Assembly: GCA_002269645.1 (NCBI GenBank)
Contig: NIVC01001377.1
Span: 62,001 to 126,000 of the forward strand
Reading direction: 5' to 3'
DNA length: 64,000 nt
From: Macrostomum lignano
Taxonomy: Eukaryota
Part shown: piece by piece, positions 17,566-63,396 of the stretch
Numbering within the stretch: the first letter of the stretch is position 1
Layout: each line of letters opens with the position of its first letter
The notes under the pieces: model-generated
What the model saw: the letters and a program-made list of their open reading frames with translations, nothing else
What the model was told of the DNA's origin: nothing
The model's database searches: none
Program-made: the position numbers and the translations under genes

Positions 17566-19166
17566 TCACTGCAGTCTCATCCGACTGAGCTTGGCGTGAG
17601 TCCAGCTGTCTCTCTGCTCCGCTGCAGTTTCCATGGCAACCAGGCGCCCCAAGTCGGCCCCGTCTCGCCGCAGCTTCGCCCTCGCCCACAGCCTCCGCTC
17701 CTCATCTTCCCTGCTGCGGTGAGCGCCGCTGTCGCTGCCGCTGCGGTTCGAAACTCGCCACCGCTTCTGCCTGACCCAGCCGATCTTCTCCTCGTCCTGC
17801 GTCTCCATGGCGACGCGTCTCTCTTTCTCGATCATCTCCATCTGCTGCAGGCTGAGCTCCACGTGCTCGCGGCAGTCGCTGTAGTGAGCCAGAGTGAGCA
17901 GCTCCTCCAAGTCCGGGTCTTCTTCCAGCTCTCGCTTCCAATCCTCTAGTTTTATTGCAGGTGCGCGATTGCGGAGCAGCTCAGCTTGGAGACTCCAGCT
18001 CAGACAGCGGAAGTTCACGTACAGGTGGGAGGAGAGAGGCTGCGACAGTCTGGCTGTGAACAGAGTCTGCGTGAACTCGGGAAGGAATGGGAAGCGAGGC
18101 GGAGAGTCGCAGGGGAGGCAGAACCTCCACGACCAGTCTAAATCTTCTGGCAGTTTGGTTGCACTGTATTCAGACCCGTGAATATCCTGTGGCTTCAACC
18201 CTGACTGAACCTGATGTCTCTGCAGCTCCATCGCGAGTCTCTCAGCCTCCTCAGATTCTCCGAACTTCAAATGCGCCATGGCAGTCATGCACAGGGCGGC
18301 GCACTTGCACCACTGCAGCTCATGCAGGAGACTGAGCTGCCTCATCAGGGTGTCTCTGTCGCTCGATTCTGACTGCAGCTTGCTTACACACTGGTGCACC
18401 ACACTGTACACGTCTGCGAAATTGGAGTACATTTCTTTTTGATACTTCTTTCCTTCCCTGATCTCCGTAACAGCAGTCGGCGCTGTCAGAGGCAGCAGAG
18501 TGAACGGGTGAAAGTAGAACTTCTTTGACTGCAGAGGTCTCACGAGTTTCCTCAGCTGCTCGACCACTCCGCCGATGTCGCTTCTCAGCTCACAAAGTCG
18601 GTCTCGAACCCTCGCCTTTGTGTTGTCGAAGTCGCCGCCGATTCCAGCGTTCTTGAAGTAGAGCGGAGCGTCGGGCATGAAGAAGTGCGGCATGCACTCA
18701 TCGGGCTTATTGATGAATCTTCTAGAATTGATGAATCTCAGCATCATGTCGAGAGACTCCTTGAGCAGAGCGATCAGATTGTCGGCCTGCCAAGCCTCAG
18801 TTTTAGGATGTGTCCCATGCTTTTCCAGCATAAAGAATAGCAGAGTCTTTGCATGGTAGGTCTTGAGTCCAGGTGTGTCCAGAGTGAGCGGCAAGTGTCT
18901 CTTGAAGATGAACTTGATGAGTGTGAACAGCTGGCCCTGGACTGTGCTCAGCCGTCTCATGATGTCTTTCTCTTGGAAGCTGAAGCTCACTCTGAACTCG
19001 TTGGTCGATCTCGGTCTGGTCGCCCGAACGAGATGAACCTTATCATTGGATCTAAGCAGTTTTCTAATCCTGTCCTCACAGAAACTGCTGCAGCACTTGA
19101 TCGCATGGCACGTGTCCTGTGCAGGCCGCACACCGCACGACGTGGCGGTCTCAGCAGGTTGGCTGC
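17566..19166 (-). CDS. Last exon of ANK + cGAS-like (Mab-21/cGLR) nucleotidyltransferase gene
   Basis: Motifs QDTCHAIKC, EFRVSFSFQEKDIMRRL, KTYHAKTLLFFMLE and CMPHFFMPDAPLY resemble the Mab-21/cGAS core. Acceptor ctctgcAG at 19168-19167 joins the phase-1 donor at 36277 in frame (...VAVGAG|SQPAETATSCGVRPAQD...). Confidence 0.85.
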
Positions 19167-19268
19167 CTGCAGAGCGCAGTGAGCGGAGAGTCGCTTTGTG
19201 GCGAGTGGAAAAGATGGGTTGGTTTGAAACTGCTTGCAGGCGGCACAGCTATGGAGTTGATGGAGGGG

Positions 19269-19688
19269 AGTAGAAGGCATGAGGGGGCTTCTGGGACAAA
19301 ATTTTTCACCTCCTCCATAATCCCATTAAATCCATCCATATTATCCCTGACAGAATCAGAAAAAAAGGGGGGTCGCACCTGCTCACAAAACCTCCTCCAT
19401 AATCCCATTAAATCCATCCATATTATCCCTGACAGAATCATGAAAAAGGGGAGGGGCCGCACTTGCTCCGAAAACTTCGAACATAATCCCATTAAATCCA
19501 ACCATATTATCCCTGACAGAATCAGAGCAGGTGTCCACTGATACCTGTTATGCTCACTGTGGACACTTGTTATGCTCACTGACACAGACATAATCCACCA
19601 ACATCCACCCATAGCATCTTCGAAACAATCAGAAAATAATCTGCATTCTTCTCCCCACATTCAATCCGAAGCGTTGAAACCAGATCCC
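19269..19688 (+). repeat. Left terminal inverted repeat (420 bp) with three internal ~45-50-bp direct repeats
   Basis: Reverse complement of 35563-35982. The ORF-track translations across both TIRs are identical up to the element end. The internal motif CATAATCCCATTAAATCCA..CATATTATCCCTGACAGAATCA occurs three times. Confidence 0.95.
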
Positions 19689-19754
19689 TAAAACTTTAAA
19701 TCCCCAAACCCAGGGTCCTTACCCTTTGAAAAAAAAATTAAATTCTCAATAAAA

Positions 19755-19994
19755 ATGTTTCCAGTTGTCTCTCCAGGTTCTTATTATACTCAGCCTCATC
19801 CATTGTACAAATCCAAGTACCAATGCAGACTAGAATGCAGCAAATACATGAGAAAATATTGGCCCGACGTTAATATCAATGTCCCTAATATTAATCTAGC
19901 TCTCCAAAGACACTGGTTTCATAAGTATGGAGTAACCTACGTAAAAGATTACGACAGCTACTATAACTTTGCAGAAATCATTAAGCAATTGTAA
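19755..19994 (+). CDS. Small 79-aa ORF in subterminal inverted region
   Basis: ATG-initiated; paralog on the opposite strand at 35262-35498. Confidence 0.6.
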   Translation: MFPVVSPGSYYTQPHPLYKSKYQCRLECSKYMRKYWPDVNINVPNINLALQRHWFHKYGVTYVKDYDSYYNFAEIIKQL

Positions 19995-20351
19995 TTTTTC
20001 CTACATTCTCTCAATGATCAACGTCAATACGAACTCTTCACCGTTGAAATCAACACCCACTACTATAAGGAGTACTATATAGGAGTACTATATGCTAGGA
20101 CTACTATTAGTAGATAATGAGTTTTTGTTTGCGACAAATATCCGACAAACTGTCGGATTTTTTTTTGCTCAACAAAAACTGTCGGAAAACTGCCGGAAAA
20201 CTGTCGGAAAACTGTCGGAAAACCACCTCAAATACTGGGAAATGCACTGTCGATGTACGCAGTCTCTATTTGGTGTGTGCAATGCAAATCCCCCTCCCGG
20301 TTCTCTCTTCTCCCAAACACCCGCTAATCCAGCTGAATTTTCTTACTTGAA

Positions 20352-20801
20352 TCATTCTGCTCTCTCAACCCCCAGCTCTTTCAACAGTCTTCCTAATTCT
20401 TTACTTGGTGCGTGCAACGCAAAGCCCACCCCTTCTCCCAAACCAACCCCCAACCCCAACTTTGCCTTACTAAAAATAACAGCTTTAACTAGCTTCCGAG
20501 CGATCGATTCCTTCCACCCGCTTGAAGCCCCTATATTGTCTAGTCTCCTAAGCATTTCTTTGTCCCAACGATTCTTCTCCTCAGGAAAATCTCTATATTT
20601 AACGTCATGCCACATGCACACAGAGTCTAGCTCGTTCACAGGCTCATGCCCAGGATGTGGATTATTGTTTTTATCTAACTGTATTTCAAGTGGATTCAAA
20701 GGCCCGCAATATTTATAGCCGGGAAGTGTCCAGCCTTTGTTTGGATGAGGAAGCTTTTCTATCAGTCCATGTGAATCTATTTTACCACCAGAGCGCTGCA
20801 T
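20352..20801 (-). CDS. Parvovirus-type phospholipase A2 domain protein (adintovirus PLA2X-like)
   Basis: LPGYKYCGP (Ca-binding loop) ... NELDSVCMWHDVKY (HD catalytic dyad). Likely ATG at 20801 (MQRSGG...), ~149 aa. Confidence 0.88.
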   Translation of the reverse strand: MQRSGGKIDSHGLIEKLPHPNKGWTLPGYKYCGPLNPLEIQLDKNNNPHPGHEPVNELDSVCMWHDVKYRDFPEEKNRWDKEMLRRLDNIGASSGWKESIARKLVKAVIFSKAKLGLGVGLGEGVGFALHAPSKELGRLLKELGVERAE

Positions 20802-20831
20802 TATTTTATTTAAAATTTTCTTTTTAAAAAA

Positions 20832-21873
20832 ATGACAGATCAGAAACTTAAAAAACTCTACTACAGCGACAAAGGATTCTTTGTAGGCAAAAATGCCGTT
20901 AGTAAACTCATGGAGCTGAGTAAGGAGCCAAAAGCTACAGTAGAAAAATGGCTCTCTAAGCAGGCTGTCTTTCAAGTCTATTTCCCACCAGTAAAATTTG
21001 AAAGGCCCCATTTCAGTATTTATAAACCTAATGAAGCGCACCAAGCAGATCTTTTGTTTCTCCCCAACGACTCAGGCTACAAGTATGCTCTTACAATTAT
21101 TGACATTGCTTCCAGATATAAGGAAGCTAGCTCGCCCACTCAAGACGAAGAAGTCAGAGGTTGTTGCCAGCGCACTGCAAGATTTTTATAAAAACTCTCC
21201 GCTCACATACCCCCAAATCTTTATGACCGACCCGGGTAAGGAATTCATGGGTGTAGTGAAATCCCTTATGGAAAAGAAAAACACAGAGATTCGCTATGGC
21301 AGAACAAACTTGCACAGAGACCAGGCTTTTGTGGAAAGATTCAATCTAACTCTAGCCAAGAGACTATTCACTAAGCAGACAGCGCAAGAACTCAAACTGA
21401 GTGCGGGGCAGTACTATACCAAGTGGACAGAAAGACTCCCCACTGTTATAGAGCAACTGAACAATGAAGTCACACGCATGACTGGATTGAAACCATCCCA
21501 TGCAATTAAACAAGACACTGTCGAACTTAAGTCATCTCATAGAACAGACAACAACACGACAACCCCACACAACACGCACAACACAAAACACACCTCGAAC
21601 TACCCTAAGCTTCCAGGAGTTGAATCACCATACATACTGACAAACTCTGAGTTTCTACGCTTTTTATATCTACCTGGAGAGCTAGAGAAGGACACCAAAA
21701 GAAGAGCTACAGATCCATACTTCAGCCTTGATGTGCATAAAATAGACAGACATTTTACCTCCGACTCCGGTGACTATTACTTTTTATCTCAAGCCTTTAA
21801 CCCTAAATCCCCCACGCGGTCATTCACTAGAGCTGAACTCCTAGTGATACCAGCTGACACAGAAATTAATTAA
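20832..21873 (+). CDS. Retroviral-type (rve/DDE) integrase of Polinton, one frameshift at ~21125
   Basis: HQADL...YALTIIDIASRY, then after the frameshift FMTDPGKEF...VERFN (D, D, E). The lesion looks like an AGCT duplication. Confidence 0.92.
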
Positions 21874-21889
21874 AATATTAAAATAAAAA

Positions 21890-22344
21890 ATGACAAAGAT
21901 TGAAACCAGAACCATCAATAAACTCAATAAAATCATTGAATCAAAGAAACCAGGTCTTATATCAATTAAAGGTATCAAAGTAAAAATCGATCCCACACAC
22001 AAATAGTTCAATGTAATGAGCAAAGACACAGCATCACAGATGAAAAGTCAGGAGGAATCCTACCATTAGCAGCTCTTATTCCGATCATTGCAGGCGCTGT
22101 AAGTGCCGCAGGTGGTGTAGCTGGAGGTGTAGCAACTGCTGTTAAAGCTGGTAATGATAGAGCCCACCAGCTAGAATTGCAAAAGATTGCAAGAGACAAA
22201 GGTATAACAATTAAGGCAGGAGAGGGCTGCCCTGATTTTGATGATTGTGATGATTGTGAGCATGAAAATTCTGTAAGCAAGTCTGACATTGTCAAAGCCA
22301 TCATGACACTGCACAATGCTGGGTTTACAATAATGCGGATGTGA
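21890..22344 (+). CDS. Small virion protein with adenovirus pX-like hydrophobic segment, one frameshift at ~22003
   Basis: Joined frames read MTKIETRTINKLNK...KSGG|ILPLAALIPIIAGAVSAAGGVAGGVATAVKA. This resembles the adenoviral pX C-terminal GG|ILPLLIPLIAAAIGA after an adenain-type cleavage site. Confidence 0.55.
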
Positions 22345-22468
22345 TGAGGTTTAAAACCCCACTTTATCCAGCTTCATAAACCTAGCGCTACTTATAGGAT
22401 GTAGAAACAGTTCAACTTTTCTATCAGGGTGGTCACCCTCAAAGTTTTTTTTTTATTTTAGAGAAAAA

Positions 22469-25400
22469 ATGCCAAAAGCTAATCCAGCAAAAGATTTAGT
22501 CAACAAATATTTTTCAAAAGGCGTCTCATTTCAAGACAAAAGTAATTTACTAAGAGAAGCATGTAAACAAAAGTTTAACACCGACCCTGGTCACCTGGGA
22601 AGCTATGAAAAACAGTTGGAAATCATCAATCAATTAGAATCAACCAGTATGCGCCTATAAAAAATCTGCAAAGGAACACCAAGAGAGGAGTCGCAACTTA
22701 GTTAACAAATACGAAACTCTCACTGGTGAAAAAGCAAAGTACCCACAAAATAAGCAGGAACAAGAGAAATTAGAGCAATTAATCCATTTAAAAGAGTCGG
22801 AGCTTGCCATTGAAGAGATTAATTTTGCACAGAGGAAGTTTACAGAACATTACATAGAGTACACAATCCCAATTAACGGCACCAACGGTACCACCGCAAA
22901 CATCTACGACTATAAAGACAGCATCCAATCAGTTGTTGATCACACACTCAAAACACGCAAGACTTTAAACTACAGATATCATTCAAGATTGCGTTTTATA
23001 TGCCTGCAAAACCCACTGAGCATCTCGAGTATTACATGACAACAAAGGCAAAGCCATTCACCCCTACAGACACACTGGATCCTTTCCTTCAAGATGTCAC
23101 TAAGAAAATTGAAGCGTTTACATCCAGAGGTTCCGGATGGGTCGTGGGAGGGATTCAAAGAGCGACTGTCATGGTCATGAAATATGACCCACTTAAAGCC
23201 TCCTCTTATATAGAGCTCCCGCATAAGCTAGCCGGTAAAAAAGCTTGCATAAATGTTAAAAATAAAGACAATTGCTGTGCTCTATGGGCAGTTCTTTCTG
23301 CACTTCTTCATGATAGTGTCCCTCACCACCCCGAAAGAACCTCAAATTATCAAAATTATTTCAACTACTATCTCATCGAATGCGAAAAGAAGGGAATCAG
23401 GTTTGACAAAGGAGGCTTGGCGATCTCTCAGATCCCAAAGCTAGAAGAAGTGTTTAATAACAAAATTAGAATCACAGTCTTTGAGTGGAGTGAAAAAACT
23501 GAGAAAGTTCAACCGGTCAGATGTAGCAAAGACGTTTTAGATCCTGAGGGGAAAAGGCGGACTGAAGTGGATCTTCTAGTGATTGGTAATTTACTAGAGG
23601 AGGCTCACTATGTTTGGATTAAAGATCTTTCAAGACTCATTCACAAGCAGTTGAATAATCATCACGAGGCTGTTGCCATCTGCCGCTTGTGCCTTAAGCA
23701 TTACAGTGGACCTGAACGCTTTGAAAAACTAGCAGAGCATGAATTATCATGCGAGGATCACCCGACAAACTGCTCTCTTCCTTCAGCTGAAGAGAAGTAT
23801 CTCCGGTTTAAGAACTATCACAAGATGGAGAAGCTCCCATTTGTTGTATATGCTGATTTCGAATGCTCAATCGTGCCAGAACTCAAAAACAAACTCAAAC
23901 TCAAAAACATGTCCCCAATTCAGTAGCATATGCCTTTATTAATACAAAAGGACTTGTTGAGTATAATTATTTCTTTGGAGAGCAGTGTGTGGAGCAGTTT
24001 ATTGCCAGAATGTTAGAGTTGCAAAAAGTGATTAGCACCCTTCAACCTGTTCCAATAATGATGACTGAGGAGGATGAAAGCAATTTCCTATCAGCAACTC
24101 ATTGCCACATCTGCAGGAAACATTAACTTGCACTAATATTAAAAACCCCACCGTTAGGGACCACTGCCACTTTACTGGGAAATTTAGAGGTGCAGCGCAT
24201 AACACCTGTAATCTAAAGCTAAAATCGAACATTCATGATCTAACGATATTTTGTCACAACGCAAAGAACTATGACATGCATTTAATAGTTGAAAAAATCG
24301 GCATGATTCCAGACATACACCTTGATGCATCGCAGAGAACAAGGAGAAGTTTAAGTGTGTTGATATTAAACAGGATAATTCGGGTACAGGTAAAATAAGA
24401 CTGAAGGATTCATATCAATTTCTAGCTGCCAGTCTAGACGAACTAAGCAAGAATCTAAAAGATGAACAATGTACATATACAAAGATGTTTGCAAGTAAAA
24501 TTAACAACAGTGATGAATCATTTAAACTTTTAAGAAAGAAAGGCTTCTACCCCTATGAAAATATTACTGGGTATCACGTATTTGAAGAAGGTTTACCACC
24601 ACAAGAAGTTCTTTTCAAAGCTAACAGACTCTGGAATCTCTGACAAAGACTATGAGCACGCGAAGCATGTCTATAATTACTTTAATTGTCAAAACTTCTT
24701 CCAGTATCACCTGCTTTACCTCTTCACAGATGTGTTTCTGCTGGCTGATGTGTTTGAAACCTTCAGATACACCTGGTACACAGCATATGGCCTCGATCCA
24801 GCACATTATGTGTCTCTGCCTGCCACTAGCTGGGAATCTTTGCTTAAAATGAAATGGGATCAAGATCCAGATTGGTACATTGAACTTCTTACAGACATTG
24901 ACATGTACAATTTTGTCGAATCGTCAAAGCGAGGGGGAATCTCAATTTGCGTTAACAGGTATGCAAAAGCAAACAATCCCTACATTGAATCTTACAATAA
25001 GGAGCAGCCCTCAAACTACATTACTTACTTGGACGCTAATAATCTCTACGGGTGGGCGATGAGTCAAGATCTTCCAGTTAGAGATTTTCGATGGCTACCC
25101 TCATCAGAATTCAAATGGGACTTTTCATTGGCTGCCATTTATGAGGTTGATGTTTACATTCCACCAGAGCTTCACGACTATTTCTCTGACTTTCCACCCT
25201 TCCCAGAGAACATCAAGTGCCCGAAAATAATCGAAACTCCCAATGATAATAATGGAACTTGGCACCTGTCAGGAACAGAAAAAGAACATACAGAGAAACT
25301 AACACAGAATCTAAACAACAAGACACGTTACAAAATCCATTACAAACTGCTTCAGTATTTTATCTCACTTGGTTGCAGGGTCACCAAAGTTCACAGGGCT

Positions 25401-26306
25401 CTTACATTTACAGAGGAAGCGTGGATGAAACCCTACATTGATAAGAACACCCAGTTTAGGACCAAAGCAACCAACGACTTTGACAAGAACCTCTTTAAGT
25501 TGGCCAACAACTCTGTCTATGGCAAGACTCTTGAGAATGAGCGGAAAAGAACAAACCTGAAACTTGTTACCTCATCAGAGCCTGCTGTTATTCAGGCAAA
25601 TATGTCAAAGCCAACATTCAAAGAACTCCATATCTTTAATAGCTACTTAGGTGTGATCATATTTTACAAAACCAAGGTGACGCTGCGCAAGCCGATCTAT
25701 ACAGGTGTCACTGTTCTCGACGAATCAAAACGTCTGATGTACCAGTTCTTCTATGGCATGAAGCAGCAGTACAAGGATAAAATGAAACTCTTGTACACTG
25801 ACACAGACAGTTTTATTATGGACATTCAAACAGAAGACATTTATCAGGACATGCTGCAGCAAAAAGATTTGTTTGACTTGTCTGAGTATGATGAATCTTT
25901 CAGGACACAGAATGGCGATCAAGTGTTTGACGCCACTAACAAGAAAGTGATTGGGAAAATGAAGGACGAGATTGCTGGTGACATAATCACTGAATTCATT
26001 GGGTTGAGAGCAAAGTCCTATTTTGTAAAATGTGAGTCGTCAGACCCAATTAAAAAATCAAAGGGAATTCCGAAACGTGTGGTTAGGAAGGAAATTAATG
26101 AAGCTGAATACAGAGACGCCTTGAATTGCAACAAAAAGACATCACATGAGTTCTCAAAGCTACAATCTAAAAACCATATTATTCACACAATTCAGCAAAA
26201 GAAGATTGGACTGTCAGGTGCAGATAACAAGAGATTCATTTTTGATGACAATATCAACAGTCTACCGTTCGGGCATTGGAGATTAGGTTTAGGAGGTTGG
26301 GTTTAG
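22469..26306 (+). CDS. Protein-primed family B DNA polymerase (with N-terminal extension), broken by ~6 frameshifts
   Basis: Motifs across successive frames: YADFEC (ExoI), VRDHCHFTGKFRGAAHNTCN, FCHNAKNYDMH, DSYQFL, YLDANNLYG (motif A), KLANNSVYGKT (motif B), LLYTDTDS (motif C). Confidence 0.95.
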
Positions 26307-26359
26307 GAGGTGGAGACTAGGTTTAGGTTTAAGAGAAAGTTTAATAAACCTCATAAAAA

Positions 26360-26758
26360 ATGACGACAAATAACTTTCTTGAAGATTTGGCTAACGAACT
26401 GGAAATCCCAAACTTTAGAGGAATATTTATGAGGGACACTCTGCCTGATTTTCCTCTAAGAAAGGAATGCGGCATCATGAACTTTGACACCACCGATAAG
26501 CCAGGATCTCATTGGGTTTGCTGGGTGATTGATCCCGATCGCAAGCACAAGTGTTATTACTTCGATAGCTATGGGACGGCAGTACCAGAAGAGCTAAGAA
26601 ATTATATGAAGGGAAAAAATAAAAAAATTTATCGCTCAGACTTTATTCTCCAAGGTCTTAGCAGTGATATTTGCGGTGAGCTGTGCATGACTGTTTTGTA
26701 TGCAATGACCAAAACACGAAAGACCTACAAGGAAATTATTCGTACCTGTGTTTCATAG
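26360..26758 (+). CDS. Adenain-like cysteine maturation protease
   Basis: PGSHWVCW (His), YFDSYG (Asp), ILQGLSSDICGELC (Gln/Cys); intact, 132 aa. Confidence 0.92.
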   Translation: MTTNNFLEDLANELEIPNFRGIFMRDTLPDFPLRKECGIMNFDTTDKPGSHWVCWVIDPDRKHKCYYFDSYGTAVPEELRNYMKGKNKKIYRSDFILQGLSSDICGELCMTVLYAMTKTRKTYKEIIRTCVS

Positions 26759-26762
26759 GGGT

Positions 26763-27464
26763 TCATTGTGCATTTCTCGTCGTCCTTCTTACCGAATTTC
26801 TCGTTGTCCTTCTTTCCGCATAATGTTGAAGAACTTTCTCGAGTTCATTTCTCAGCTGACTCATGTCATCAGTACCGACCATGTTCAAGTTCATTCGAAT
26901 TGATTGTTCATAAAGATCCTGAATGGTTTTGAACTCATCCTCTGAAATGAACTTATCCTCGATTGCCCTTGAAATGTACCCTATGATTGATGTGTGCACC
27001 CCTTTCTCTTTTACTTGCTTCTCCTGTAGCTGCTTTAGTTTTTTTCGCCTGTTTCGCGCTAATGCTCCAGTAATTGCTGAAATAAGTCCACATGCAGCAC
27101 CCACAGAGCCGAGCGGGATTGCGATTGGGGCTGTGATGACTGGCAACACTGAGACAGCTGCAGCAGATCCAGATAGAACAGACACAGATCCTAGAATCAT
27201 ATTGCTGTAGTCGAAAAATTTACAGTGGCTGTCATAGCGCTTAATTTTCTTTGTGTTGTGGAAAATATTTTTTTCAAGATCATCGCGCATTTTTTGAATC
27301 TCCACCAGTCGAAACTGTTGAGAGTTACAAGTAATGACGGGGTAGAGTTTTTGTTGCTCATATTGGGGTGCATAGGTGCTGTGGGTGTGAATTCGGTGCC
27401 ATTTGGTTTGGTGCTGTCGGTATTTTAGGTTCAGACTGATCGTATAGAGAATTTTGTTGGGCCA
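26763..27464 (-). CDS. Polinton protein with long Gly/Ala hydrophobic segment (putative membrane-active), 5' frameshift(s)
   Basis: QQFRLVEIQKMRDDLEK followed by ILGSVSVLSGSAAAVSVLPVITAPIAIPLGSVGAACGLISAITGAL. The likely ATG at 27464 is in a different frame. Confidence 0.65.
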   Translation of the reverse strand, partial: WPNKILYTISLNLKYRQHQTKWHRIHTHSTYAPQYEQQKLYPVITCNSQQFRLVEIQKMRDDLEKNIFHNTKKIKRYDSHCKFFDYSNMILGSVSVLSGSAAAVSVLPVITAPIAIPLGSVGAACGLISAITGALARNRRKKLKQLQEKQVKEKGVHTSIIGYISRAIEDKFISEDEFKTIQDLYEQSIRMNLNMVGTDDMSQLRNELEKVLQHYAERRTTRNSVRRTTRNAQ

Positions 27465-27500
27465 TTTTTTTTCCCTAGAAAAAATAAAAAAATTATAAAA

Positions 27501-28286: not shown

Positions 28287-28302
28287 CTTTTAATAGCAAA
28301 TT

Positions 28303-29101
28303 TTAAATTACAGTTCTTTTTTCTTTGCTGATAATCACAAACTGGTAAGGCTGATTCCACTTGTCATAGCAAAGATTAACGAATTCCTCTTGTGAAATCT
28401 TTCTGCTTGAGTTTTTTGTTGGATTTATGAAATAGGCAGGCGCAATGACCTCATTGTAAAATCTTTTTAACCTGTCCTGTGGAATGGTTGGAAACAGGAG
28501 AATCAGATTGCAGTTCCCACGAATTGTTTTGTTCGGGAGCTCGAACCAATTCTGTGCAATGTAAATTACATTACAATTGTTATGTCGCCCTCTTGTAAAA
28601 TAGTTTTCTATCTGCTTCTGTGGGCCTGTCATACAATCATCAAAGACGATCAAATGCTTTCTCCCTTTTCTAGCTCATCTGGTTGGGGTAGAAGTTTGGT
28701 CTTTGGATCAGCCTGTGGATCTCCATAGGTGAACACTTTAATGTTCTGCCATTTTTCATTGTCTTTGAGGTGCTTTGCATATTCAGCAGCTACAATTTCT
28801 GGGTTACTGGGAAGGATTTGTTGGTTATTAAAACATTGAATAATGTCCTCTTTGTTCAGTTTGTTTTGCAATCCAGAAATCAGCATTTTATACTCATCTT
28901 GATACAGTGTGGGAGAGTAGATGTGCAGAGTGTCATAGTCGATAAAGCCAGGTCTAAGAAGCATGTTAAAGACTCTGAATGTTTTACCTGAACCTGATGA
29001 ACCAACAACAATGCATCTGAAGTGACTCGGATTGACTCGTGATGAGAAAACTTAATCTGATTACGCGTCCAGTGAGGATTGAAGTCGTTTGAAAAGTCCA
29101 T
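28303..29101 (-). CDS. A32/FtsK-like packaging ATPase, two frameshifts
   Basis: HFRCIVVGSSGSGKT (Walker A, in a frame not shown in the track), IVFDDCM (Walker B), FTRGRHNNCNVIYIAQ (conserved R-H and Q motifs). Confidence 0.92.
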
Positions 29102-29137
29102 TTTTTCTATGATGAAAAAAAATTTAAATATAAATAA

Positions 29138-29325
29138 TTTAGATGTGTCATTTCGGGACTTAGATGTGTCATTTTGGGACTTAGATGTGTCATTTTGGGA
29201 CTTAGATGTGTCATTTTGGGACTTAGATGTGTCATTTTGGGACTTAGATGTGTCATTTTGGGACTTAGATGTGTCATTTTGGGACTTAGATGTGTCATTT
29301 TGGGACTTAGATGTGTCATTTTGAG
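29138..29325. repeat. 21-bp tandem repeat inside the Polinton (GACTTAGATGTGTCATTTTGG), ~9 copies
   Basis: Intergenic, immediately upstream of the ATPase ATG. Confidence 0.95.
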
Positions 29326-29370
29326 ACTAGTCTTGTACCTTTACATTTCTTGTACCCTCGGAAAGTACCT

Positions 29371-29748
29371 TTAGTCAAATTTGAAACCACTTCCTTTTTT
29401 AATGCTTGCTCTCATCTTCTCATAGACTGCAGGGTCCACACTGTCTGGGTTTGGGGCCAGCGGAGCCAGAGGTTGAATCTCTTGTTTAGGTGTTACAGTA
29501 TCCTTTATCTTTTTGGCTGCTGTGGCTACACTGCCAGCCGCTTCGGCAACGTTCTTGATGTTCTCTTTGTTCTCTCCAATGACCTTAAAAATCTTGGCCC
29601 CCTGAGCGATCAAATCGGCAAGGCCATTCCCAGAGCGTTCTTTTCTTGGATAGTGGCCTGCAAGGAAAAGTCCAGATCCGCGTTTAATGAGATTAAGTTC
29701 CTCTTTGTCATAGTATTTGTCCACGTCTTTCTCAAAAATAATGGGCAT
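29371..29748 (-). CDS. Small putative core/membrane-lytic virion protein with GxG cleavage-like motifs
   Basis: ATG at 29748 (MPIIFEK...). It contains RGSG|LFL, SGNG|LADLIAQGAKIFKVI (amphipathic) and KKGSG|FKFD. Confidence 0.6.
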   Translation of the reverse strand: MPIIFEKDVDKYYDKEELNLIKRGSGLFLAGHYPRKERSGNGLADLIAQGAKIFKVIGENKENIKNVAEAAGSVATAAKKIKDTVTPKQEIQPLAPLAPNPDSVDPAVYEKMRASIKKGSGFKFD

Positions 29749-29764
29749 TTTTACTTGAAATAAA

Positions 29765-31001
29765 TTATTTTTTGTTGAACCGCGAAAGCAGAAGCTCTCT
29801 CGCCCTCTTATCGATGTATTTTCTCTCAAGCATTTTGTCCAGGATGTTGACAAATTCTTTTCTATTCTCATCTTTCATTCCGGTCTTTGCCGCTCCTAGA
29901 AGAACCGCTACTCGCTTGTAGATTTCAGAAATTCCTTTTCCAGTTGCGGGCGGTTGGTCTTGGGTTGTGGAGTTGGTTGGGCTTGTAGCTGCTGGGGAGG
30001 TGATGCAAAAGACTGCTCACTTTCAGAGATGGAACTGTCATGTGGTGCCTGTCTTTGTTGAGGTGTGAAAACTCTTTGCTTGATTCTATTCATTCGATCT
30101 GGAGAGTGTTGTTCTAAATGTTGCCAGTCTGTTGGGTTTTGTTTCTTATATTCAGCTACTTTCAAAGGGTCTAACTGCTCGAGTTGACTGAGTACTTGTT
30201 CTTCTGTGAATGTTGCTGCTGTGGTTGTGGTTGTTGTTGTTGCTGTTGTTGTTGTTGTTGTTGTTCTAGATATTTTATGACTTCCGCCTGATCTGGCAAA
30301 TCGAACCATTGTTTAAAGTGTTTGTACTTTTTGAATCTAGTCAGGTTGACACCGTTATCATACATAAGTTTCAGGACTTCTGGGGCCTTTAGTATTTCTA
30401 TATCTCTAGCAAGAGCAAAAGTCACTAGATCTCTATAGTTCTTTAGCTGTTTGTCCGAGATTCTCTCTTGGTTCTTGGTCATAAAAGTCAGTAAGGTTTC
30501 TGTGAAAGGAATGCTCTTAGTTTCCGAGCCTTTGACAACAGAAATATGTTTCTTATTTATGTCGATATAATATTCCACTGGTTAATTATAAATATTTTTT
30601 CTCCACATACTTATTCCAAATACATATTTCCCATCATGTTCTACACGCTCTACTGGTCCAAAAATGTTATCTGTCACTTTTAGTTGCTGCTGCGGTTGTG
30701 ATTGTTGTGGTTGTGATTGTTGTGGTTGCGGTTGTGCCTGTGGTTGCGGCTGTATCTGTGGTGCTTCTGGAATTTTGCCCAAAGCCTTTTGCACCTGGGT
30801 TTCCTGTATGTCGTCGATAGTTTCTTTGACCTGATCAATATTTTTCTTAGCTTCTCCATACCCGGGCTTATGAAACTCTGTGGCTGCTTGGACAAACTCA
30901 TTGTAGGATTGTTGCTCCTTATTTATTAGCCCGGTAACTCGTTTCTCTGCTTGTGCTAGCTTCTCCAATTCAGATATCTGCTGTGTACTTTTTCGCTTCA
31001 T
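29765..31001 (-). CDS. Gln-rich Polinton hypothetical protein split by frameshifts
   Basis: Three track ORFs (30582-31001, 30171-30578, 29908-30309) plus a final segment ending ENRKEFVNILDKMLERKYIDKRARELLLSRFNKK* abut with 1-2-nt frame changes. Confidence 0.6.
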
Positions 31002-31031
31002 TTCTTATTTTATTTTATTTTTAGTTAAAAA

Positions 31032-32318
31032 ATGAACGACCCACTGACACCAGTTTTCTACAAAATTAACAAGCCTATTTTGAGTGATGACAGCACTATT
31101 AAGGCGACTCAGGTAAGAGTTCCCAGTCAGGAAAATCAGAATGAAACTAATCTTGGTCCAGGTCAAACACTGACATTTACATACAATGGATGTTCGTCTT
31201 TGGTTAGTGTGCACAGTCTTAAGAGCGGCTTCCATATGACATTTCAATTCAAGACAAAGGGTGGTGCGGATGCGGCTCGTGCTAACGTTGACAAGCATGA
31301 TGCGGATGTGGCTCTGATCAGTAACTTTTGGGCGTACATGTTCAAGGAGTTTAGTGTATCGAATGGGAGCACAGAGTTGGAGCGAATCGCCAACTTTGGA
31401 ATTGTCTATGACGCTCATTGTTTGATCGAGAATCCTGATTTTATTCAGTTGGGAAGTGGTGCGGGTTTTATTGCAGATGAAAAAGAAGGAGACACCAATT
31501 ACAGTGGCTATAAAAAGAGGAAGAAGAGATACAACTATGCATTGCAAGGTGCTGATGATGCTGCTAAGAACCCACAGTATCGGTCTGTTGATGTATTTGT
31601 ACCATTGAGATTCATGAGTGGATTCTGTAATACATTTAATCGACTGACTAGTAACTTTAGCTACACCTTTAGGATGACTAGAGATGATCGCAGTAGAGTG
31701 TTGTGGACTGGGGCGGATCACACAAGGATGGAGGTGAAGCTAACCGGAATCGAGCTGTATTTGGAAGTCATTGAGCCAAAGACTGCACTAAAAGCAGACT
31801 ATCTTAAGGCAATAGAGAAGGACATTGATGTTGCATACACAGCCTACATGTGTCGAGATGAGCGAAACGAAACTAGAACAAACATCTGCATCAAAGAGGG
31901 ATCATGCAGCAATCCAAGGTATATCATTATTAATATGAGAAACCCAAATAGCATTATACGCTACATGCATGGAGACGTGCGGTCCATTCAGCATGAAATC
32001 AGTGATAATCTTTACCCTGCACTGCCACAAAATGGAGATTTCAGTCAGAACAAGATTAGCAAATTTTACAGCGAGTTGGTCGACTTGGCTGTGAAAGAGA
32101 ACAATGGAATTGCTATCACTGCTCTTCAATATGGAACTCTATATCCGATGTTTGGCGCTGATGTGTCTGCCAGACAAATGCCTACTGATAACAGCCCTGT
32201 GAATATCGTGACTAACATTGAAAGGACTGCCGCAACACCCGTGGACCTGTACATTGTCTATGCATTTGAGAGGAAGGTGAAGCTTAACATGATCAACAAT
32301 TCATCCAGTAAAGTTTAA
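31032..32318 (+). CDS. Major capsid protein (double jelly-roll, hexon-like)
   Basis: Intact 428-aa ORF. Its size, its position next to the minor capsid gene and the C-terminal LYPMFGADVSARQ motif fit a Polinton MCP. Confidence 0.8.
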   Translation: MNDPLTPVFYKINKPILSDDSTIKATQVRVPSQENQNETNLGPGQTLTFTYNGCSSLVSVHSLKSGFHMTFQFKTKGGADAARANVDKHDADVALISNFWAYMFKEFSVSNGSTELERIANFGIVYDAHCLIENPDFIQLGSGAGFIADEKEGDTNYSGYKKRKKRYNYALQGADDAAKNPQYRSVDVFVPLRFMSGFCNTFNRLTSNFSYTFRMTRDDRSRVLWTGADHTRMEVKLTGIELYLEVIEPKTALKADYLKAIEKDIDVAYTAYMCRDERNETRTNICIKEGSCSNPRYIIINMRNPNSIIRYMHGDVRSIQHEISDNLYPALPQNGDFSQNKISKFYSELVDLAVKENNGIAITALQYGTLYPMFGADVSARQMPTDNSPVNIVTNIERTAATPVDLYIVYAFERKVKLNMINNSSSKV

Positions 32319-32341
32319 ATATTTTTTTGTCGGTGAAAAAA

Positions 32342-33204
32342 ATGGAAGCCATAGCCGAAAGACTAAACAACATTGTTTCACACTCTAAGGAGAGCATTCC
32401 TATTACAATAACCGGGCGAATTAATGACTCAAACGGGATGTTTGTTGAAAAATTAGAGCAGGCGATTCGCCTGGATCCAGGCGCTAATTACCATGTCTAT
32501 CTTAACGACTTCACTGGTTGGTCAAACGTTCCCAATGTGATGGCAGCAAATAATAAGTTTTATTACAAATGGAAAGGTGCAGCAGCAGACCCTGTGGTAT
32601 TCCAGGTGAGCACGCAAAGTGTGGATACCTACAATAACTTTCTAGAAAATGTCTTTACTAAGAGAGGCCATTTTGAGACACCTGATGCGAGTAAGCCAGA
32701 GAAGAAACTGTTCCCTGTCAAACTAACCTATGATCTGACTGTAATGAGAGTGGTCATGCAAGTTCACAAAGATGCGGAGGTTGAGTTTAAAGATGACACT
32801 TGGTATAGGGAACTGGGATTCGAGAAGAAAGTTTATAAGGCAGAATCCGCGGCGCAGACCGCCACTCAAGCATCGGGACTGTTAGAATGGTCCGGGAAAG
32901 TGTAAGCGGTTTGTTCTTAGCACCCAATATTGCAGACATTGTAAAGGGTTTGAATATTCTAATCAGAAGCAATCTCAGTCTTGATTGGGTATTTAAGGGA
33001 AAGCGAACTAATATTTTGTACAACATCTCCAACTCTGTAGCTGGAGGACAGATGGTGGTAGAGAAACCAAATCCAGTGAAAAGAGTTGTATTGAGTAATA
33101 AGGAGATTCACGAGATTGTGCTACAGTTTGAGACTGAAGATGGGATGGGCGTTGATTTTAATGGGGAAGAGTTTGTATTGACGTTAATCATTGAGAGAAT
33201 GTGA
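32342..33204 (+). CDS. Minor capsid protein (single jelly-roll, penton-like), one frameshift at ~32877
   Basis: WSNVPNVMAANNKFYY ... NILIRSNL ... VDFNGEEFVLTLII; directly follows the MCP. Confidence 0.78.
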
Positions 33205-33510
33205 TGGAAAAATAACTAAATATTTTATTTCAGTTCTATTTCGAATTTTTAGTATATTTTTTCTAGTCATATTACTTATTAGTAGGCAACCTCACGCTTT
33301 TAGACTGACCAAGCATTATTTTTTTCTAACCAGTATTTAGTGAAAGGATTGAAAACACAAAAGAAATCGGACACAAAAAGATGTCCGATGTCAAAAGTTG
33401 GTTAACTTCGCAAGTATTCGCACATAACAAACACAAGTCTGTCACTAGTCTTTCTCAGAAAAAAAAGCTTTCTTTTTGCACAGTTGAATTCGTGCGAATT
33501 CCTGTTATGC

Positions 33511-34924
33511 ACATGATTTTTACGAACGTTCGTGAAAATCATGTAACCACTGAGAGCCGCTTTATGCTGCACATGATTTTTACGAACGTTCGTGAAAATC
33601 ATGTAACCACTGAGAGCCGCTTTATGCTGCACATGATTTTTACGAACGTTCGTGAAAATCATGTAACCACTGAGAGCCGCTTTATGCTGCACATGATTTT
33701 TACGAACGTTCGTGAAAATCATGTAACCACTGAGAGCCGCTTTATGCTGCACATGATTTTTACGAACGTTCGTGAAAATCATGTAACCACTGAGAGCCGC
33801 TTTATGCTGCACATGATTTTTACGAACGTTCGTGAAAATCATGTAACCACTGAGAGCCGCTTTATGCTGCACATGATTTTTACGAACGTTCGTGAAAATC
33901 ATGTAACCACTGAGAGCCGCTTTATGCTGCACATGATTTTTACGAACGTTCGTGAAAATCATGTAACCACTGAGAGCCGCTTTATGCTGCACATGATTTT
34001 TACGAACGTTCGTGAAAATCATGTAACCACTGAGAGCCGCTTTATGCTGCACATGATTTTTACGAACGTTCGTGAAAATCATGTAACCACTGAGAGCCGC
34101 TTTATGCTGCACATGATTTTTACGAACGTTCGTGAAAATCATGTAACCACTGAGAGCCGCTTTATGCTGCACATGATTTTTACGAACGTTCGTGAAAATC
34201 ATGTAACCACTGAGAGCCGCTTTATGCTGCACATGATTTTTACGAACGTTCGTGAAAATCATGTAACCACTGAGAGCCGCTTTATGCTGCACATGATTTT
34301 TACGAACGTTCGTGAAAATCATGTAACCACTGAGAGCCGCTTTATGCTGCACATGATTTTTACGAACGTTCGTGAAAATCATGTAACCACTGAGAGCCGC
34401 TTTATGCTGCACATGATTTTTACGAACGTTCGTGAAAATCATGTAACCACTGAGAGCCGCTTTATGCTGCACATGATTTTTACGAACGTTCGTGAAAATC
34501 ATGTAACCACTGAGAGCCGCTTTATGCTGCACATGATTTTTACGAACGTTCGTGAAAATCATGTAACCACTGAGAGCCGCTTTATGCTGCACATGATTTT
34601 TACGAACGTTCGTGAAAATCATGTAACCACTGAGAGCCGCTTTATGCTGCACATGATTTTTACGAACGTTCGTGAAAATCATGTAACCACTGAGAGCCGC
34701 TTTATGCTGCACATGATTTTTACGAACGTTCGTGAAAATCATGTAACCACTGAGAGCCGCTTTATGCTGCACATGATTTTTACGAACGTTCGTGAAAATC
34801 ATGTAACCACTGAGAGCCGCTTTATGCTGCACATGATTTTTACGAACGTTCGTGAAAATCATGTAACCACTGAGAGCCGCTTTATGCTGCACATGATTTT
34901 TACGAACGTTCGTGAAAATCATGT
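33511..34924. repeat. 60-bp tandem array: 24 copies of a 34-bp imperfect palindrome separated by an invariant 26-bp spacer
   Basis: ACATGATTTTTACGAACGTTCGTGAAAATCATGT (self-complementary except one T/G pair) plus AACCACTGAGAGCCGCTTTATGCTGC; the copies appear identical. Confidence 0.98.
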
Positions 34925-34953
34925 TATCAGTGGGAATCGAACCATGCGGGGCA

Positions 34954-34996
34954 GACTGAGACCGGTTTCGGGCTTGTTTGCCCTCGTCAGTCAGTC
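34954..34996 (-). ncRNA. Minimal type-I hammerhead ribozyme
   Basis: Minus strand reads GACUGA-CUGACGA-GGGC(AAACAA)GCCC-GAAA-C(CG)G-UC|UCAGUC. It has a perfect 6-bp stem I, the full CUGANGA/GAAA/NUH core, a 4-bp stem II and a palindromic ACCGGU stem III. Predicted cleavage is after C34960. Confidence 0.9.
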
Positions 34997-35043
34997 ATAG
35001 CCACGCGAGGTCGGCTCCACCTCTAGCCAGCTGAGTGGAACTG

Positions 35044-35052
35044 CTATTTATA
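35044..35052 (-). promoter_or_regulatory. TATA box (TATAAATAG) ~50 nt upstream of the hammerhead
   Basis: Consensus TATA in a GC-rich context, oriented toward the ribozyme and the array. Confidence 0.45.
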
Positions 35053-35261
35053 CGCCCTTGCACCAAGTCCTTGCCTTGCACATGGCGACATTTTCTAGTC
35101 CACCATGTGAGGAATTCGCGCCATGTTCAAATAGCTTTACTATCAGTAAGCTATCGCTTACAAATGTAACTAATACGAGCCGCTATATGCTGCACATGAT
35201 TTTGTCAGTATTTTTAGATCTTGCGTCTGCACTCTACAGGGTACAACCGTGTAGTTGGCTA

Positions 35262-35498
35262 CTACAACTGCCTTATAACTTCAGCAAAGTTATAATAGCT
35301 GTCAAAATTGTTAATGACTACTCCGTGTTTTTCAAACCAGTGAGATTTAAGTGCTTGATTAATATTAGGGACATTGATATCAACGTCGGGCCAATATTTT
35401 CTCATGTATTCGCTGCATTCTAGTTTGCATTGGTACTTGGATTTGTACAATGGATGAGGCTGAGTATAATAGGAACCTGGAGAGACAACTGGAAACAT
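35262..35498 (-). CDS. Small 78-aa ORF in subterminal inverted region (paralog of 19755-19994)
   Basis: MFPVVSPGSYYTQPHPLYKSKYQC is identical in both; the C-termini diverge. Confidence 0.6.
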   Translation of the reverse strand: MFPVVSPGSYYTQPHPLYKSKYQCKLECSEYMRKYWPDVDINVPNINQALKSHWFEKHGVVINNFDSYYNFAEVIRQL

Positions 35499-35562
35499 TT
35501 TTATTGAGAAATTAATTTTTTTTCAAAGGGTAAGGACCCTGCGCTGATGATTTAAAGTCTTT

Positions 35563-35982
35563 GGGATCTGGTTTCAACGCTTCGGATTGAATGTGGGGAG
35601 AAGAATGCAGATTATTTTCTGATTGTTTCGAAGATGCTATGGGTGGATGTTGGTGGATTATGTCTGTGTCAGTGAGCATAACAAGTGTCCACAGTGAGCA
35701 TAACAGGTATCAGTGGACACCTGCTCTGATTCTGTCAGGGATAATATGGTTGGATTTAATGGGATTATGTTCGAAGTTTTCGGAGCAAGTGCGGCCCCTC
35801 CCCTTTTTCATGATTCTGTCAGGGATAATATGGATGGATTTAATGGGATTATGGAGGAGGTTTTGTGAGCAGGTGCGACCCCCCTTTTTTTCTGATTCTG
35901 TCAGGGATAATATGGATGGATTTAATGGGATTATGGAGGAGGTGAAAAATTTTGTCCCAGAAGCCCCCTCATGCCTTCTACT
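35563..35982 (-). repeat. Right terminal inverted repeat (420 bp)
   Basis: Reverse complement of 19269-19688. Confidence 0.95.
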
Positions 35983-36277
35983 GAGGGGAGAGAAAGAGAA
36001 AATGAATTTTACATTCTGTCAGATCAGGTTTTTACGTATTGCATATTGTAGGCATGCTTTGGAGGTGCGATCGGAGTGATTGGTTGCCATAATTTGTATT
36101 TAAAGCGAAATGAGTGCTGGGTGGTATTTCAGCAATGTTTCGAACTCAGGTTGAAGTTGTGAACTCAGAAATTCGGCCACTCGGCATCGAATAAAAATGA
36201 ATTATTGATGGGCAAATTTAACAAATTCTATTGCATGTGAATCTCAGCATTCTAATGATGAACCCAGCCTCACTCAC

Positions 36278-36639
36278 CTGCTCCCACTGCCACCTGTGCG
36301 TGGCCCTCCGTCACCTGCAGCCGAGTGGCGTCTCTGCAGGAGTATTTCCTTTTGCAGCCACCTTTCATATGGAACTTTTGCTTAGCAACCAGCACAGTCC
36401 AGTCAATGTCCGAGTCTGCAGCTGTCCTGCCGTTCACTTGCACCAGACTGTTGGCCCAGCCCTCTGCGTAGCTGCCCGTCATCTGCCTGCCATCCTGTGT
36501 GAGGACTCGAGCGACTCCTTCCAGCCAGTCAGCCAGTCCCTGCTGACACTCTGCTCTCTGCTCGGTGAATCCCGCATCGCTGAGCAGTCGATGCAGCTCC
36601 CTGCTTAGACGGCGGTCCTGCTCGGAGTGGTCCCAGCGT
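36278..36639 (-). CDS. Exon 3 of ANK-cGLR gene: nucleotidyltransferase active-site motif
   Basis: MTGSYAEG...ADSDIDWTV is the GS...DxD signature of the pol-beta/cGAS NTase fold. Acceptor ccccAG at 36641-36640; donor GTGAGT at 36277. Confidence 0.85.
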
Positions 36640-36738
36640 CTGGGGAGAGGTAAGAGTGGAGTGAGTGGAAGCGGATTTGCAAAGTGGCCCAAGCTCAACC
36701 CAAAGAAGGAAAGGTGGAATGAAAGCGGTCACACTCAC

Positions 36739-36780
36739 GGATGGAGGCGTTGAGCGGCTGCCTGCAGGTGCTGTGGGTTT
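36739..36780 (-). CDS. Predicted 42-nt microexon 2 of ANK-cGLR gene
   Basis: Polypyrimidine-ttccAG acceptor and GTGAGT donor; the exon is symmetric in phase 2 and open (ENPQHLQAAAQRLHP). Confidence 0.6.
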
Positions 36781-36864
36781 CTGGAATGTGTGAAGGAAAG
36801 GGAGGTAAGTTGGTGAAGTGATTGCAAGTAGAATTGCAACTAATGGCAACAAATGGCAACTGAC

Positions 36865-37856
36865 TCGGTGGGATTCAGCAACCGCAGCACCTGCCGCTGC
36901 TCATATCGCTGTGCGAGCTGCGCACACGTGAGGCCCTGACTGTCTCGATGGCTGGCATCGGCTCCATTGTCGATGAGAGTCTTGGCTGCTCGCACGTGAC
37001 CGGCTTGGCAGGCTCGTGACAGAGCAGTGCGACCGTGAGTGTCTTGAGCGTGCAGTGAGGCGCCGAGATCGATGAGTTTGTGAATGAGTTCGTGCTGACC
37101 AGCATCAGCTGCGAGCATTAGAGCGGTGGCTCCAGTGTTGTCGTCTGGAAGATCGACATGCTGTGTGCTGAATCGCTCATGATTGAGCAGTGTGGCGGCA
37201 AGAGCGACGTGTCTTTGAGAGATGGAGAGACAGAGCAGCTGTGTGATTTGATCTGGCTGCATTCGAGAGAGGGTGTCGGTGAGAACGGAGTTGCTGCCTT
37301 CGATGGCCATCGCTGCAGTGAAGCTGAGGATGGTGTTGGATTGGAAGAGCCATTGGGGCTCGAGGCCGAGGGAGGCAACGAAAGGTTCTTGAAGATTAGA
37401 GCAAGCGTTTATTGAGTATTGGAAACGGAGATTCCTACTTTGATCGGGATTCGAGAGACACGAGATGAGAAACTCAACGATTTCAAAGTGACCATATACT
37501 GCAGCATTTTCGGCAGCTTTGATGCAGCAGGTGTCCCAGTTTGATTGGTCATTGATTTGTAAGAGGAGAAACATGATGATTTCAAAGTGACCTAATACTG
37601 CAGCATATTCGGCAGCTTTGATGCAGCAGGTGTCCCTGTTTGATTGGTCATTGATTTGTGAGAGGAGAAACTTGACGACTTCAAAGTGACCACTGAATGC
37701 AGCAACTTCGGTAGCTTTGATGCAGCAGGTGTCCCTGTTTGATTGGTCATTGATTTGTACGAGGAGAAACTTGACGTCTTCAAGGCGACCTTTACGTGCA
37801 GCATCAGCAATGTTTTCGGTGGTCGCTTGCTGATGTCGGCTTTGATTTTGGCCCAT
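36865..37856 (-). CDS. Exon 1 of ANK-cGLR gene: MGxxxS myristoylation motif plus ankyrin repeats
   Basis: MGQNQS start, four GHFEIV-type 33-aa repeats, then canonical ankyrins (GATALMLAADAG, GRTALSRACQAGH); GTCAGT donor at 36864. Confidence 0.85.

Positions 37857-58013: not shown

Positions 58014-63396
<5,383 letters not shown>

Follow-up and report, generated by a model that had tools for sequence, protein, structure and literature searches.

A gene of Macrostomum lignano that encodes a predicted cGAS-like receptor (cGLR) fused to ankyrin repeats carries, in its last intron, a virus-like DNA element of the Polinton/Maverick type. Both lie in a window of 64,000 nt from contig NIVC01001377.1 (assembly GCA_002269645.1), which is the whole stretch of DNA analysed here and the one to which coordinates refer unless another locus is named. 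The arrangement is probably a coincidental insertion that the intron has tolerated and whose element has since decayed. According to this reading, one gene out of a large ankyrin-cGLR family with tandem duplications would have received a Polinton in its last intron, with the usual 6-bp duplication. By landing 96 nt upstream of the 3' splice site it would have left the acceptor and the proximal 96 nt in place, while extending the intron from 391 nt to 17.1 kb. The copy would then have decayed to its present state of five broken genes, terminal repeats of 94% identity and a 2-kb hammerhead/satellite segment nested in one of these repeats, and the host gene would have kept an intact 998-aa frame and its catalytic motifs, with an annotated model that splices across the element. 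That such an element sits in an immune-type gene is most likely a coincidence, since several classes of transposon have hit the introns of this family and both transposons and satellites abound in the neighbourhood.

The host gene and its annotation

Four exons on the minus strand join into a frame of 2997 nt that encodes 998 aa and contains one stop codon, the terminal one. Exon 1 (36865-37856, start codon 37856-37854) encodes the ankyrin-repeat region (Ank_2, 92 bits) and is identical to the GenBank protein PAA68676.1; exon 2 (36739-36780) has 42 nt between an AG acceptor and a GTGAGT donor and is required for the frame of the annotated protein. The cGAS/Mab-21-like domain starts in exon 3 (36278-36639), which holds MTGS (aa 398-401) and DSDIDW (aa 420-425), and continues in exon 4 (17566-19166) with the rest of the nucleotidyltransferase core, the candidate third acidic residue D483, the Mab-21_C lobe, a C-terminal helical region and the stop codon. 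All three introns have GT...AG borders, with the donors GTCAGT, GTGAGT and GTGAGT. Intron 3 (19167-36277, minus strand) measures 17,111 nt, or 391 nt minus the element, and its position is that of an intron of 59-6,047 nt in the paralogs. GS (aa 400-401) and DSDID (aa 420-424) are thus encoded in exon 3 and the remaining Mab-21 domain in exon 4, so that the GS..DxD motif is indeed parted from the rest of the catalytic domain, as had been claimed when this DNA was first annotated.

The same initial annotation had spliced the exons into one frame, and the chain was right: the 998-aa product is 100% identical over its full length to PAA68676.1 (BOX15_Mlig016402g1), the annotated gene of which spans 20,291 bp on NIVC01001377.1, exactly the span proposed there. 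In other words, a gene model that already existed was re-derived from raw sequence. The coding sequence is intact, with the catalytic motifs at the consensus positions of the family.

The GenBank annotation of the Mlig_3_7 assembly is a genome-guided transcriptome assembly made with StringTie/TACO from RNA-seq and mapped de novo transcripts, and transcripts that overlapped repeats were discarded in the process (PMC5730564). The latter step explains why the genes of the element are unannotated. The annotated model of PAA68676.1 splices across the whole 17-kb intron, and because the gene set derives from a transcriptome assembly, this model should rest on transcripts and not on ab initio prediction. 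It is therefore reasonable to expect that this allele is actually spliced across the element. No transcript support for PAA68676.1 other than the GenBank annotation was found, and its protein cluster has one member; the short family fragments in databases stem from the older ML2 annotation, and Mlig016402 was not mentioned in the literature searched.

A conserved intron in an expanded gene family

M. lignano has a greatly expanded family of such genes: at least 40 paralogs of the host gene are named, and a search at E<=1e-10 gives 94 cluster representatives. The family is partly tandem, and the ankyrin region of a neighbouring member lies within the window at 6-788. This region, at the left window edge, shows a 99-bp periodicity, and at 936-1298 and 37907-38295 an identical 31-bp minisatellite adjoins the start of each of the two family genes.

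Intron 3 interrupts the same codon (aa 465/466) in seven of seven paralog loci (L002-L004 and L008-L011), and homologs at 30-40% identity span both sides of the exon 3/exon 4 junction as one domain. Since the intron position is conserved in these seven loci, the two halves on either side of the element form one gene; that they are separate genes was considered and rejected, given the conserved intron and the continuous domain.

The size of this intron varies widely. In eight family members it amounts to 59, 343, 351, 492, 563, 1,340, 6,047 and 17,111 nt, and the three largest introns contain three different insertions. The 1,340-nt intron of L002 holds a solo-LTR-like insert (LTR, long terminal repeat) of about 915 bp with TG...CA ends (5190-6104 of that locus), located 20 nt from the site homologous to that of the Polinton. 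The 6,047-nt intron of L009 (13352-19397) harbours an antisense Ty3/gypsy element with open reading frames (ORFs) for gag-protease, reverse transcriptase (RT)-RNase H and integrase, and the third insertion is the Polinton of the window. At L008, LTR-retrotransposon ORFs were found within an upstream intron.

The Polinton and its insertion site

Across approx. 19.3-36.0 kb of the window, the GC content falls from 50-60% in the flanks to 40%. The element itself occupies 19269-35982 (16,714 bp, 40% GC), has AG...CT termini and is flanked by two copies of a 6-bp sequence, at 19263-19268 (GAGGGG on the plus strand, CCCCTC on the minus strand) and at 35983-35988 (CCCCTC on the minus strand). In paralog L002 the homologous target is uninterrupted and contains a single 6-mer, which confirms that the flanking copies are a target-site duplication. 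The element entered a pyrimidine-rich stretch at a distance of 96 nt (102 nt if the duplication is counted) upstream of the acceptor AG at 19168-19167, in good agreement with the approx. 100 bp given at first, and the final 96 intron nucleotides have stayed intact and share 92-93% identity with the paralogs.

The left terminal inverted repeat covers 19269-20059, its inner 69 nt (19991-20059) being a copy of the 3' end of the minor-capsid gene. The right repeat is split into an outer part (35263-35982) and an inner part (33146-33216), with a nested segment between them. The arms 19269-19993 and 35263-35982 pair over 725 nt with 94% identity and five gaps.

The gene content is that of a Polinton. 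A protein-primed family B DNA polymerase (pPolB) gene on the plus strand (22964-26306) includes an internal Endonuclease VII-like segment and is broken by about four frame changes; it has more than 5,000 homologs from animals and metagenomes (best E 3e-157), many of which carry PF03175 and/or PF02945. The rve-type integrase gene (20832-21873, plus strand) is broken by one frameshift, and tblastn with the rve gene of L005 recovers it in two frames at 41-48% identity; its direct Pfam match is weak (PF00665, 18.4 bits vs. a cut-off of 32.6). An adenovirus-type cysteine protease ORF (26360-26758, plus strand) is open and matches PF00770 with 22.0 bits (cut-off 21.3). The putative packaging ATPase gene (28303-29048, minus strand) combines Walker A (GSSGSGKT) and Walker B (LIVFDD) motifs; it is broken, with at least one frameshift, the two motifs in different frames and no in-frame start upstream of Walker A, and no FtsK/HerA-type family model matched it. 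Just upstream of this remnant lies a tandem repeat of nine 21-bp units (29139-29328, 98%). Searches of PDB and PHROGs with the polymerase, integrase and ATPase pieces returned nothing useful.

The structural genes are located in the right part of the element. The gene for the major capsid protein with a double jelly-roll fold (31032-32318, plus strand) is intact and is recovered by tblastn in a single frame. Its product scores 24 bits against PF21738, below the cut-off of 27, and full-length homologs that are 71-77% identical carry PF21738. The closest capsid relatives are short metagenome contigs and not named elements; in IMG/VR and the JGI metagenomes no relatives were found. The gene that follows (32327-33204, plus strand) is a minor capsid (penton-like) gene broken by one frameshift, with 56-68% identity in two frames to a 280-aa gene of L006; a gene following the capsid gene is conserved in the relatives L006 and L007, and the penton identity is assigned by position only. 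On the other side of the capsid gene, a gene without assigned function (29774-31001, minus strand) is homologous to a 446-aa gene in L007 and is broken by one in-frame stop and at least one frameshift. Finally, a phospholipase A2 (PLA2)-like ORF (20352-21044, minus strand) is open over 230 aa (PF08398, 51.3 bits, E 1.5e-13) and overlaps with the beginning of the integrase gene, which runs in the other direction.

In all, five genes of the element carry frameshifts or stops in this PacBio-based assembly, in which some indels within the element may be sequencing errors, and the capsid, protease and PLA2-like ORFs are open. The element is thus a Polinton/Maverick that is degraded as assembled. 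With the Polintons/Mavericks of other animals it shares the 16.7-kb size, long terminal inverted repeats, the 6-bp target duplication and the AG...CT ends, as well as pPolB, an rve integrase, a protease, a double jelly-roll capsid followed by another capsid-like gene and, as a candidate, an ATPase with Walker A and B motifs. Unlike typical Polintons, it has five broken genes and a PLA2-like ORF, and its right terminal repeat contains the 2-kb segment with hammerhead and satellite. In the literature searched, no paper linked Macrostomum to Polintons or Mavericks in substance, and the supplementary files of the genome paper mention neither name. The element, its position and the nested hammerhead segment are therefore not described in that literature; the gene and its cGLR class are published.

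The nested segment, its hammerhead and its hairpin array

The repeat proper of the left arm directly adjoins the copied minor-capsid 3' end (19991-20059); in the right arm, 2,046 bp (33217-35262, minus strand) lie between the two corresponding parts. The hammerhead and the tandem array fall within these 2,046 bp and thus sit in a segment that is nested in the right repeat or has been lost from the left one. Consequently, the hammerhead described at first as the ribozyme of the Polinton is less securely the element's own, and may not be a native Polinton feature. A native and conserved hammerhead was also considered and rejected, as its segment is absent from the repeat copy of the left arm. 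The nested segment might represent either a satellite that bears a hammerhead or an insert similar to a retrozyme. It also contains a TATA-like box approx. 40 nt upstream of the hammerhead (minus strand) and, farther upstream, one degenerate unit of the array. The hammerhead and palindrome patterns were not found in IMG/VR.

The type I hammerhead motif (34938-35008) lies on the minus strand, the sense strand of the host gene, with predicted cleavage after C34960. Its core is complete (CUGACGA, GAAA and GUC), helix I has 6 bp, and helix II has 4 bp with a G-C closing pair. The motif matches Rfam HH9 with 29.5 bits against a gathering score of 52 (E 7e-4 in a 17.4-kb search in E-value mode), and no family reached its threshold in a gathering-mode Rfam scan of the window. 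Helix III is a palindrome, ACCGGU, which is absent from the minimum-energy fold and which, having no loop, cannot form within one molecule. Such a loop-less palindromic helix III is typical of metazoan type I hammerheads, whose monomers are inefficient at cleavage and require a second copy (PMC4209133); a motif scan of the 64-kb window revealed no second copy.

The tandem array (33508-34924) comprises 23.6 units of 60 bp at 100% identity, each with a 34-nt palindrome. The palindromes fold on both strands, perfectly on the plus strand (one G.U pair) and with mismatches on the minus strand. A strand-specific hairpin array was therefore rejected, folding being slightly better on the plus strand. 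Matches of the array to Rfam miRNA families are far below thresholds and reflect the palindromes. The proposal that the host pre-mRNA contains hammerhead and hairpins in active orientation thus stands for the strand and coordinate of the hammerhead, and not for the orientation of the hairpins.

The motif can be compared with two groups of known hammerheads. It shares with the amniote intronic hammerheads of RECK, CTCL and DTNB (Rfam HH9) the type I topology, the sense orientation and a location in an intron of a protein-coding gene. Unlike them, it shows no conservation between species, arrived with a transposon instead of being domesticated, occurs as a single copy, has a loop-less helix III and scores below threshold. 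With most metazoan hammerheads it has in common the short palindromic helix III, besides a helix I of 6 bp and a helix II of 4 bp (PMC4209133; PMC6155905). Unlike satellite hammerheads, however, it adjoins the tandem repeat units instead of lying inside them.

The host protein as a predicted cGLR

Li et al. 2023 defined cGLRs by the motif pattern h[QT]GS-X8-20-[DE]h[DE]h-X50-90-h[DE]h, by two-lobe homology and by predicted structure (PMC9980059). In the host protein the first motif is present, as MTGS (398-401) followed, after 20 residues, by DIDW (422-425). Among 32 family members, G400 and S401 never vary, and conservation of D420-D424 is at least 90%. A candidate for the third acidic residue is D483, which is invariant in 13 of 13 sequences and lies approx. 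57 residues past DIDW at the start of a predicted strand; its neighbours, Q and T, are non-hydrophobic, unlike those in the h[DE]h part of the pattern.

Homology to cGAS is found at the level of profiles and structure. Pfam recognizes ankyrin repeats and Mab-21_C (27.6 bits, cut-off 24.1) in the host protein. A profile of the family matches cGAS chains in PDB with E 2e-5, and also cGAS-like receptor 1 and MAB21L1; hhalign to human cGAS, with the sequence taken from a table of PMC9980059, aligns the C-lobe (E 3e-4). Neither the profile search nor hhalign gave a sequence-level match of the N-lobe to cGAS, and a single-sequence search of PDB with the Mab-21 part found no match. As ankyrin proteins were the only hits when the full-length model served as query for a fold search, the search was redone with a domain-only AlphaFold model (predicted local distance difference test score, pLDDT, 74; predicted template modelling score, pTM, 0.77). 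The best 50 structural matches of this model in PDB are all cGAS or MAB21L1, at E approx. 1e-4, with up to 424 aligned columns and target-normalised template modelling (TM) scores of 0.33-0.51 (0.40-0.51 for most cGAS structures).

The host protein is thus a predicted cGLR, a classification that has already been published: PAA68676.1 appears in the domain table of Li et al. 2023 as an Ank_2-cGLR and was construct number 93 of the 140 that were cloned (PMC9980059). Its "Note" field is empty and no activity was reported for it; the 15 active enzymes of that screen come from insects, anemones, molluscs, hydras and corals, and none is from a flatworm (PMC9980059). Of the original label, an antiviral cGAS-like receptor, the second part agrees with these tables and with the cGAS fold, whereas the antiviral part is unproven, the active enzymes being from other phyla; sensing of nucleic acids by this protein is likewise only presumed. 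In common with published cGLRs, including ankyrin-fused ones, the protein has the Ank_2-cGLR listing, the MTGS-X20-DIDW arrangement, with the invariant D483 as a candidate third acidic residue, and a cGAS/MAB21L1 fold. It differs from them in having no reported activity, non-hydrophobic residues beside D483 and an N-lobe without a sequence match to cGAS.

Possible effects on expression of the host gene

The initial annotation had suggested that the insertion may silence the sensor, for example through intronic self-cleavage, or couple viral and immune-gene expression. The data do not support silencing: splicing in the annotated model bridges the element, neither the coding sequence nor its motifs are damaged, and the insertion spared the 96 nt next to the acceptor. 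Self-cleavage within the intron has become less plausible, given a single copy, below the Rfam threshold, of a hammerhead type that depends on dimers (PMC4209133). Coupling is likewise unsupported: the element is decayed, the gene is intact, and other transposons reside in the same intron of paralogs.

A damped or truncated expression of the cGLR, whether by premature polyadenylation or cryptic splicing, by occasional cleavage at the hammerhead or by spreading of repressive chromatin or small RNAs, is rather unlikely, although several properties of the intron would fit it. The intron is 12-15 times as long as the mean of the species (1.1-1.4 kb); its sense strand contains 16 AATAAA hexamers, where approx. 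12 are expected, and 16 ATTAAA hexamers. The hammerhead core on that strand has every conserved nucleotide, and the array is able to form 34-bp duplexes, which are possible precursors of small RNAs. However, the gene set stems from a transcriptome assembly whose model for this gene extends over the intron, the coding sequence is undamaged and has conserved motifs, and the sense strand of the intron holds no consensus AGGTRAGT donor and only two strong acceptor-like sites. The hammerhead, in turn, is a single copy of the dimer-dependent type. Moreover, an intron cut by a ribozyme may still be spliced, as the exons remain tethered to the polymerase. Any effect on expression is likely to be small.

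Is the location special?

The caveat, raised together with the claims above, that targeting may be coincidental has turned out to be the best-supported reading, in view of the several transposon classes in the introns of the family and of a transposon-dense window. More than half of the M. lignano genome consists of repeats, and the genome is partly duplicated (PMC5730564). Besides the Polinton, the window holds two Ty3/gypsy pol ORFs, one ORF resembling a long interspersed nuclear element (LINE) and approx. 25 minisatellites. These three ORFs fall within 40692-49046 and 56939-62606. The Ty3/gypsy ORFs, of 1,320 aa each, stand in tandem on the plus strand, and the LINE-like ORF (1,214 aa, endonuclease-RT-RNase H, minus strand) sits between two identical arrays of twelve 50-bp units. 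The approx. 25 minisatellite arrays, with periods of 15-50 bp and in many cases 94-100% homogeneity, are distributed over 1-16000 and 38000-64000, and they account for a strong GC skew at 10-16 kb. A short stretch at 53547-53624 resembles part of the minor-capsid gene (75% nucleotide identity; 65% amino acid identity over 26 residues) and, to judge from this resemblance, may be a remnant of another Polinton.

One further family locus deserves attention in this context. L004 (PAA65438.1, contig NIVC01001654.1) is without an ankyrin exon, and its annotated exon 1 of 19 aa (3001-3057 of that locus) lies inside a different pPolB-bearing element. The latter (1-11000) is AT-rich (27-31% GC) and has its pPolB gene on the minus strand at 6120-9825. 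From a GTAAGT donor, this exon is joined to the conserved exon-3 acceptor (CAG) across 27.5 kb of satellites. Within the same locus, perfect 529-nt inverted repeats (100%) at 11990-29441 enclose approx. 16.4 kb in which two arrays of a 23-bp satellite (2.6 kb and 8.2 kb) make up the greater part and no coding capacity was recognised.

Weighing the alternatives

Several points weigh against a coincidental and tolerated insertion. Any reads across the exon 3/exon 4 junction could stem from an unassembled, element-free allele or from cross-mapped paralogs (77-86% identical). An AT-rich insert of 17 kb with 16 sense AATAAA hexamers could lower the yield of full-length mRNA, and indel errors in the PacBio assembly may account for some of the element's breaks. 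In addition, a pPolB-bearing element lies within the gene span at two of the eight family loci, a count that is at most suggestive; the elements of the window and of L004 belong to unrelated lineages (33-47% pPolB identity) and occupy different gene positions. Together with the donor inside the L004 element that is joined to the conserved exon-3 acceptor, the two-of-eight count speaks for a functional link between Polintons and ankyrin-cGLR genes, such as preferential integration, or retention that allows transcription of the element to modulate the sensor, for instance through the hairpin array in the pre-mRNA or through first exons that stem from a Polinton. Such a link is nonetheless very unlikely, considering the unrelated lineages and different positions of the two elements, the other transposon classes in the same introns and the degraded state of the window copy. 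Chance hits are expected where a family of dozens to approx. 100 members resides in a genome of which repeats make up more than half, and the L004 model is possibly an artefact of transcript assembly. There is also at most a slim chance that recurrent hosting of Polintons couples the output of the sensor to the chromatin or transcription of the element, with a dsRNA-forming array of 23 hairpin units and a ribozyme in the pre-mRNA and with Polinton-internal exons that yield truncated isoforms (compare PAA65438.1).

It would be conceivable that the juxtaposition itself is an artefact, produced by a mis-join in the PacBio-based Mlig_3_7 assembly that placed the element in the intron, as the genome is highly repetitive and partly duplicated, and as a 60-bp array that is 100% identical over 23.6 copies is odd beside terminal repeats of 94% identity. 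A mis-join would not, however, create the precise 6-bp duplication found at both junctions; the AG...CT termini lie exactly at the ends of the repeats, and the host intron resumes on both sides, colinear with the paralogs. An artefact is thus extremely improbable. A coincidental, tolerated insertion, by contrast, resembles ordinary intronic transposon insertions, in which splice signals are spared and the coding sequence is unchanged, and the same intron of paralogs has taken up a solo-LTR-like insert and a Ty3/gypsy element. Unlike ordinary intronic insertions, it concerns a capsid-encoding virus-like element and a host gene from a family of predicted innate-immune sensors. Targeting of these genes is unlikely to have been involved.

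Significance

For users of PAA68676.1, it should be noted that its gene holds a 17-kb intron. The analysis has also delimited a Polinton clearly in a flatworm that serves as a model organism, located a hammerhead/satellite segment inside a terminal repeat of that element, and shown that the introns of the ankyrin-cGLR family gather several classes of transposon. If the insertion altered cGLR expression, a virus-like element would be interfering with, or wired into, an innate immune sensor, and such interference would fall in a phylum in which cGLR signalling is thought to have been mostly lost.

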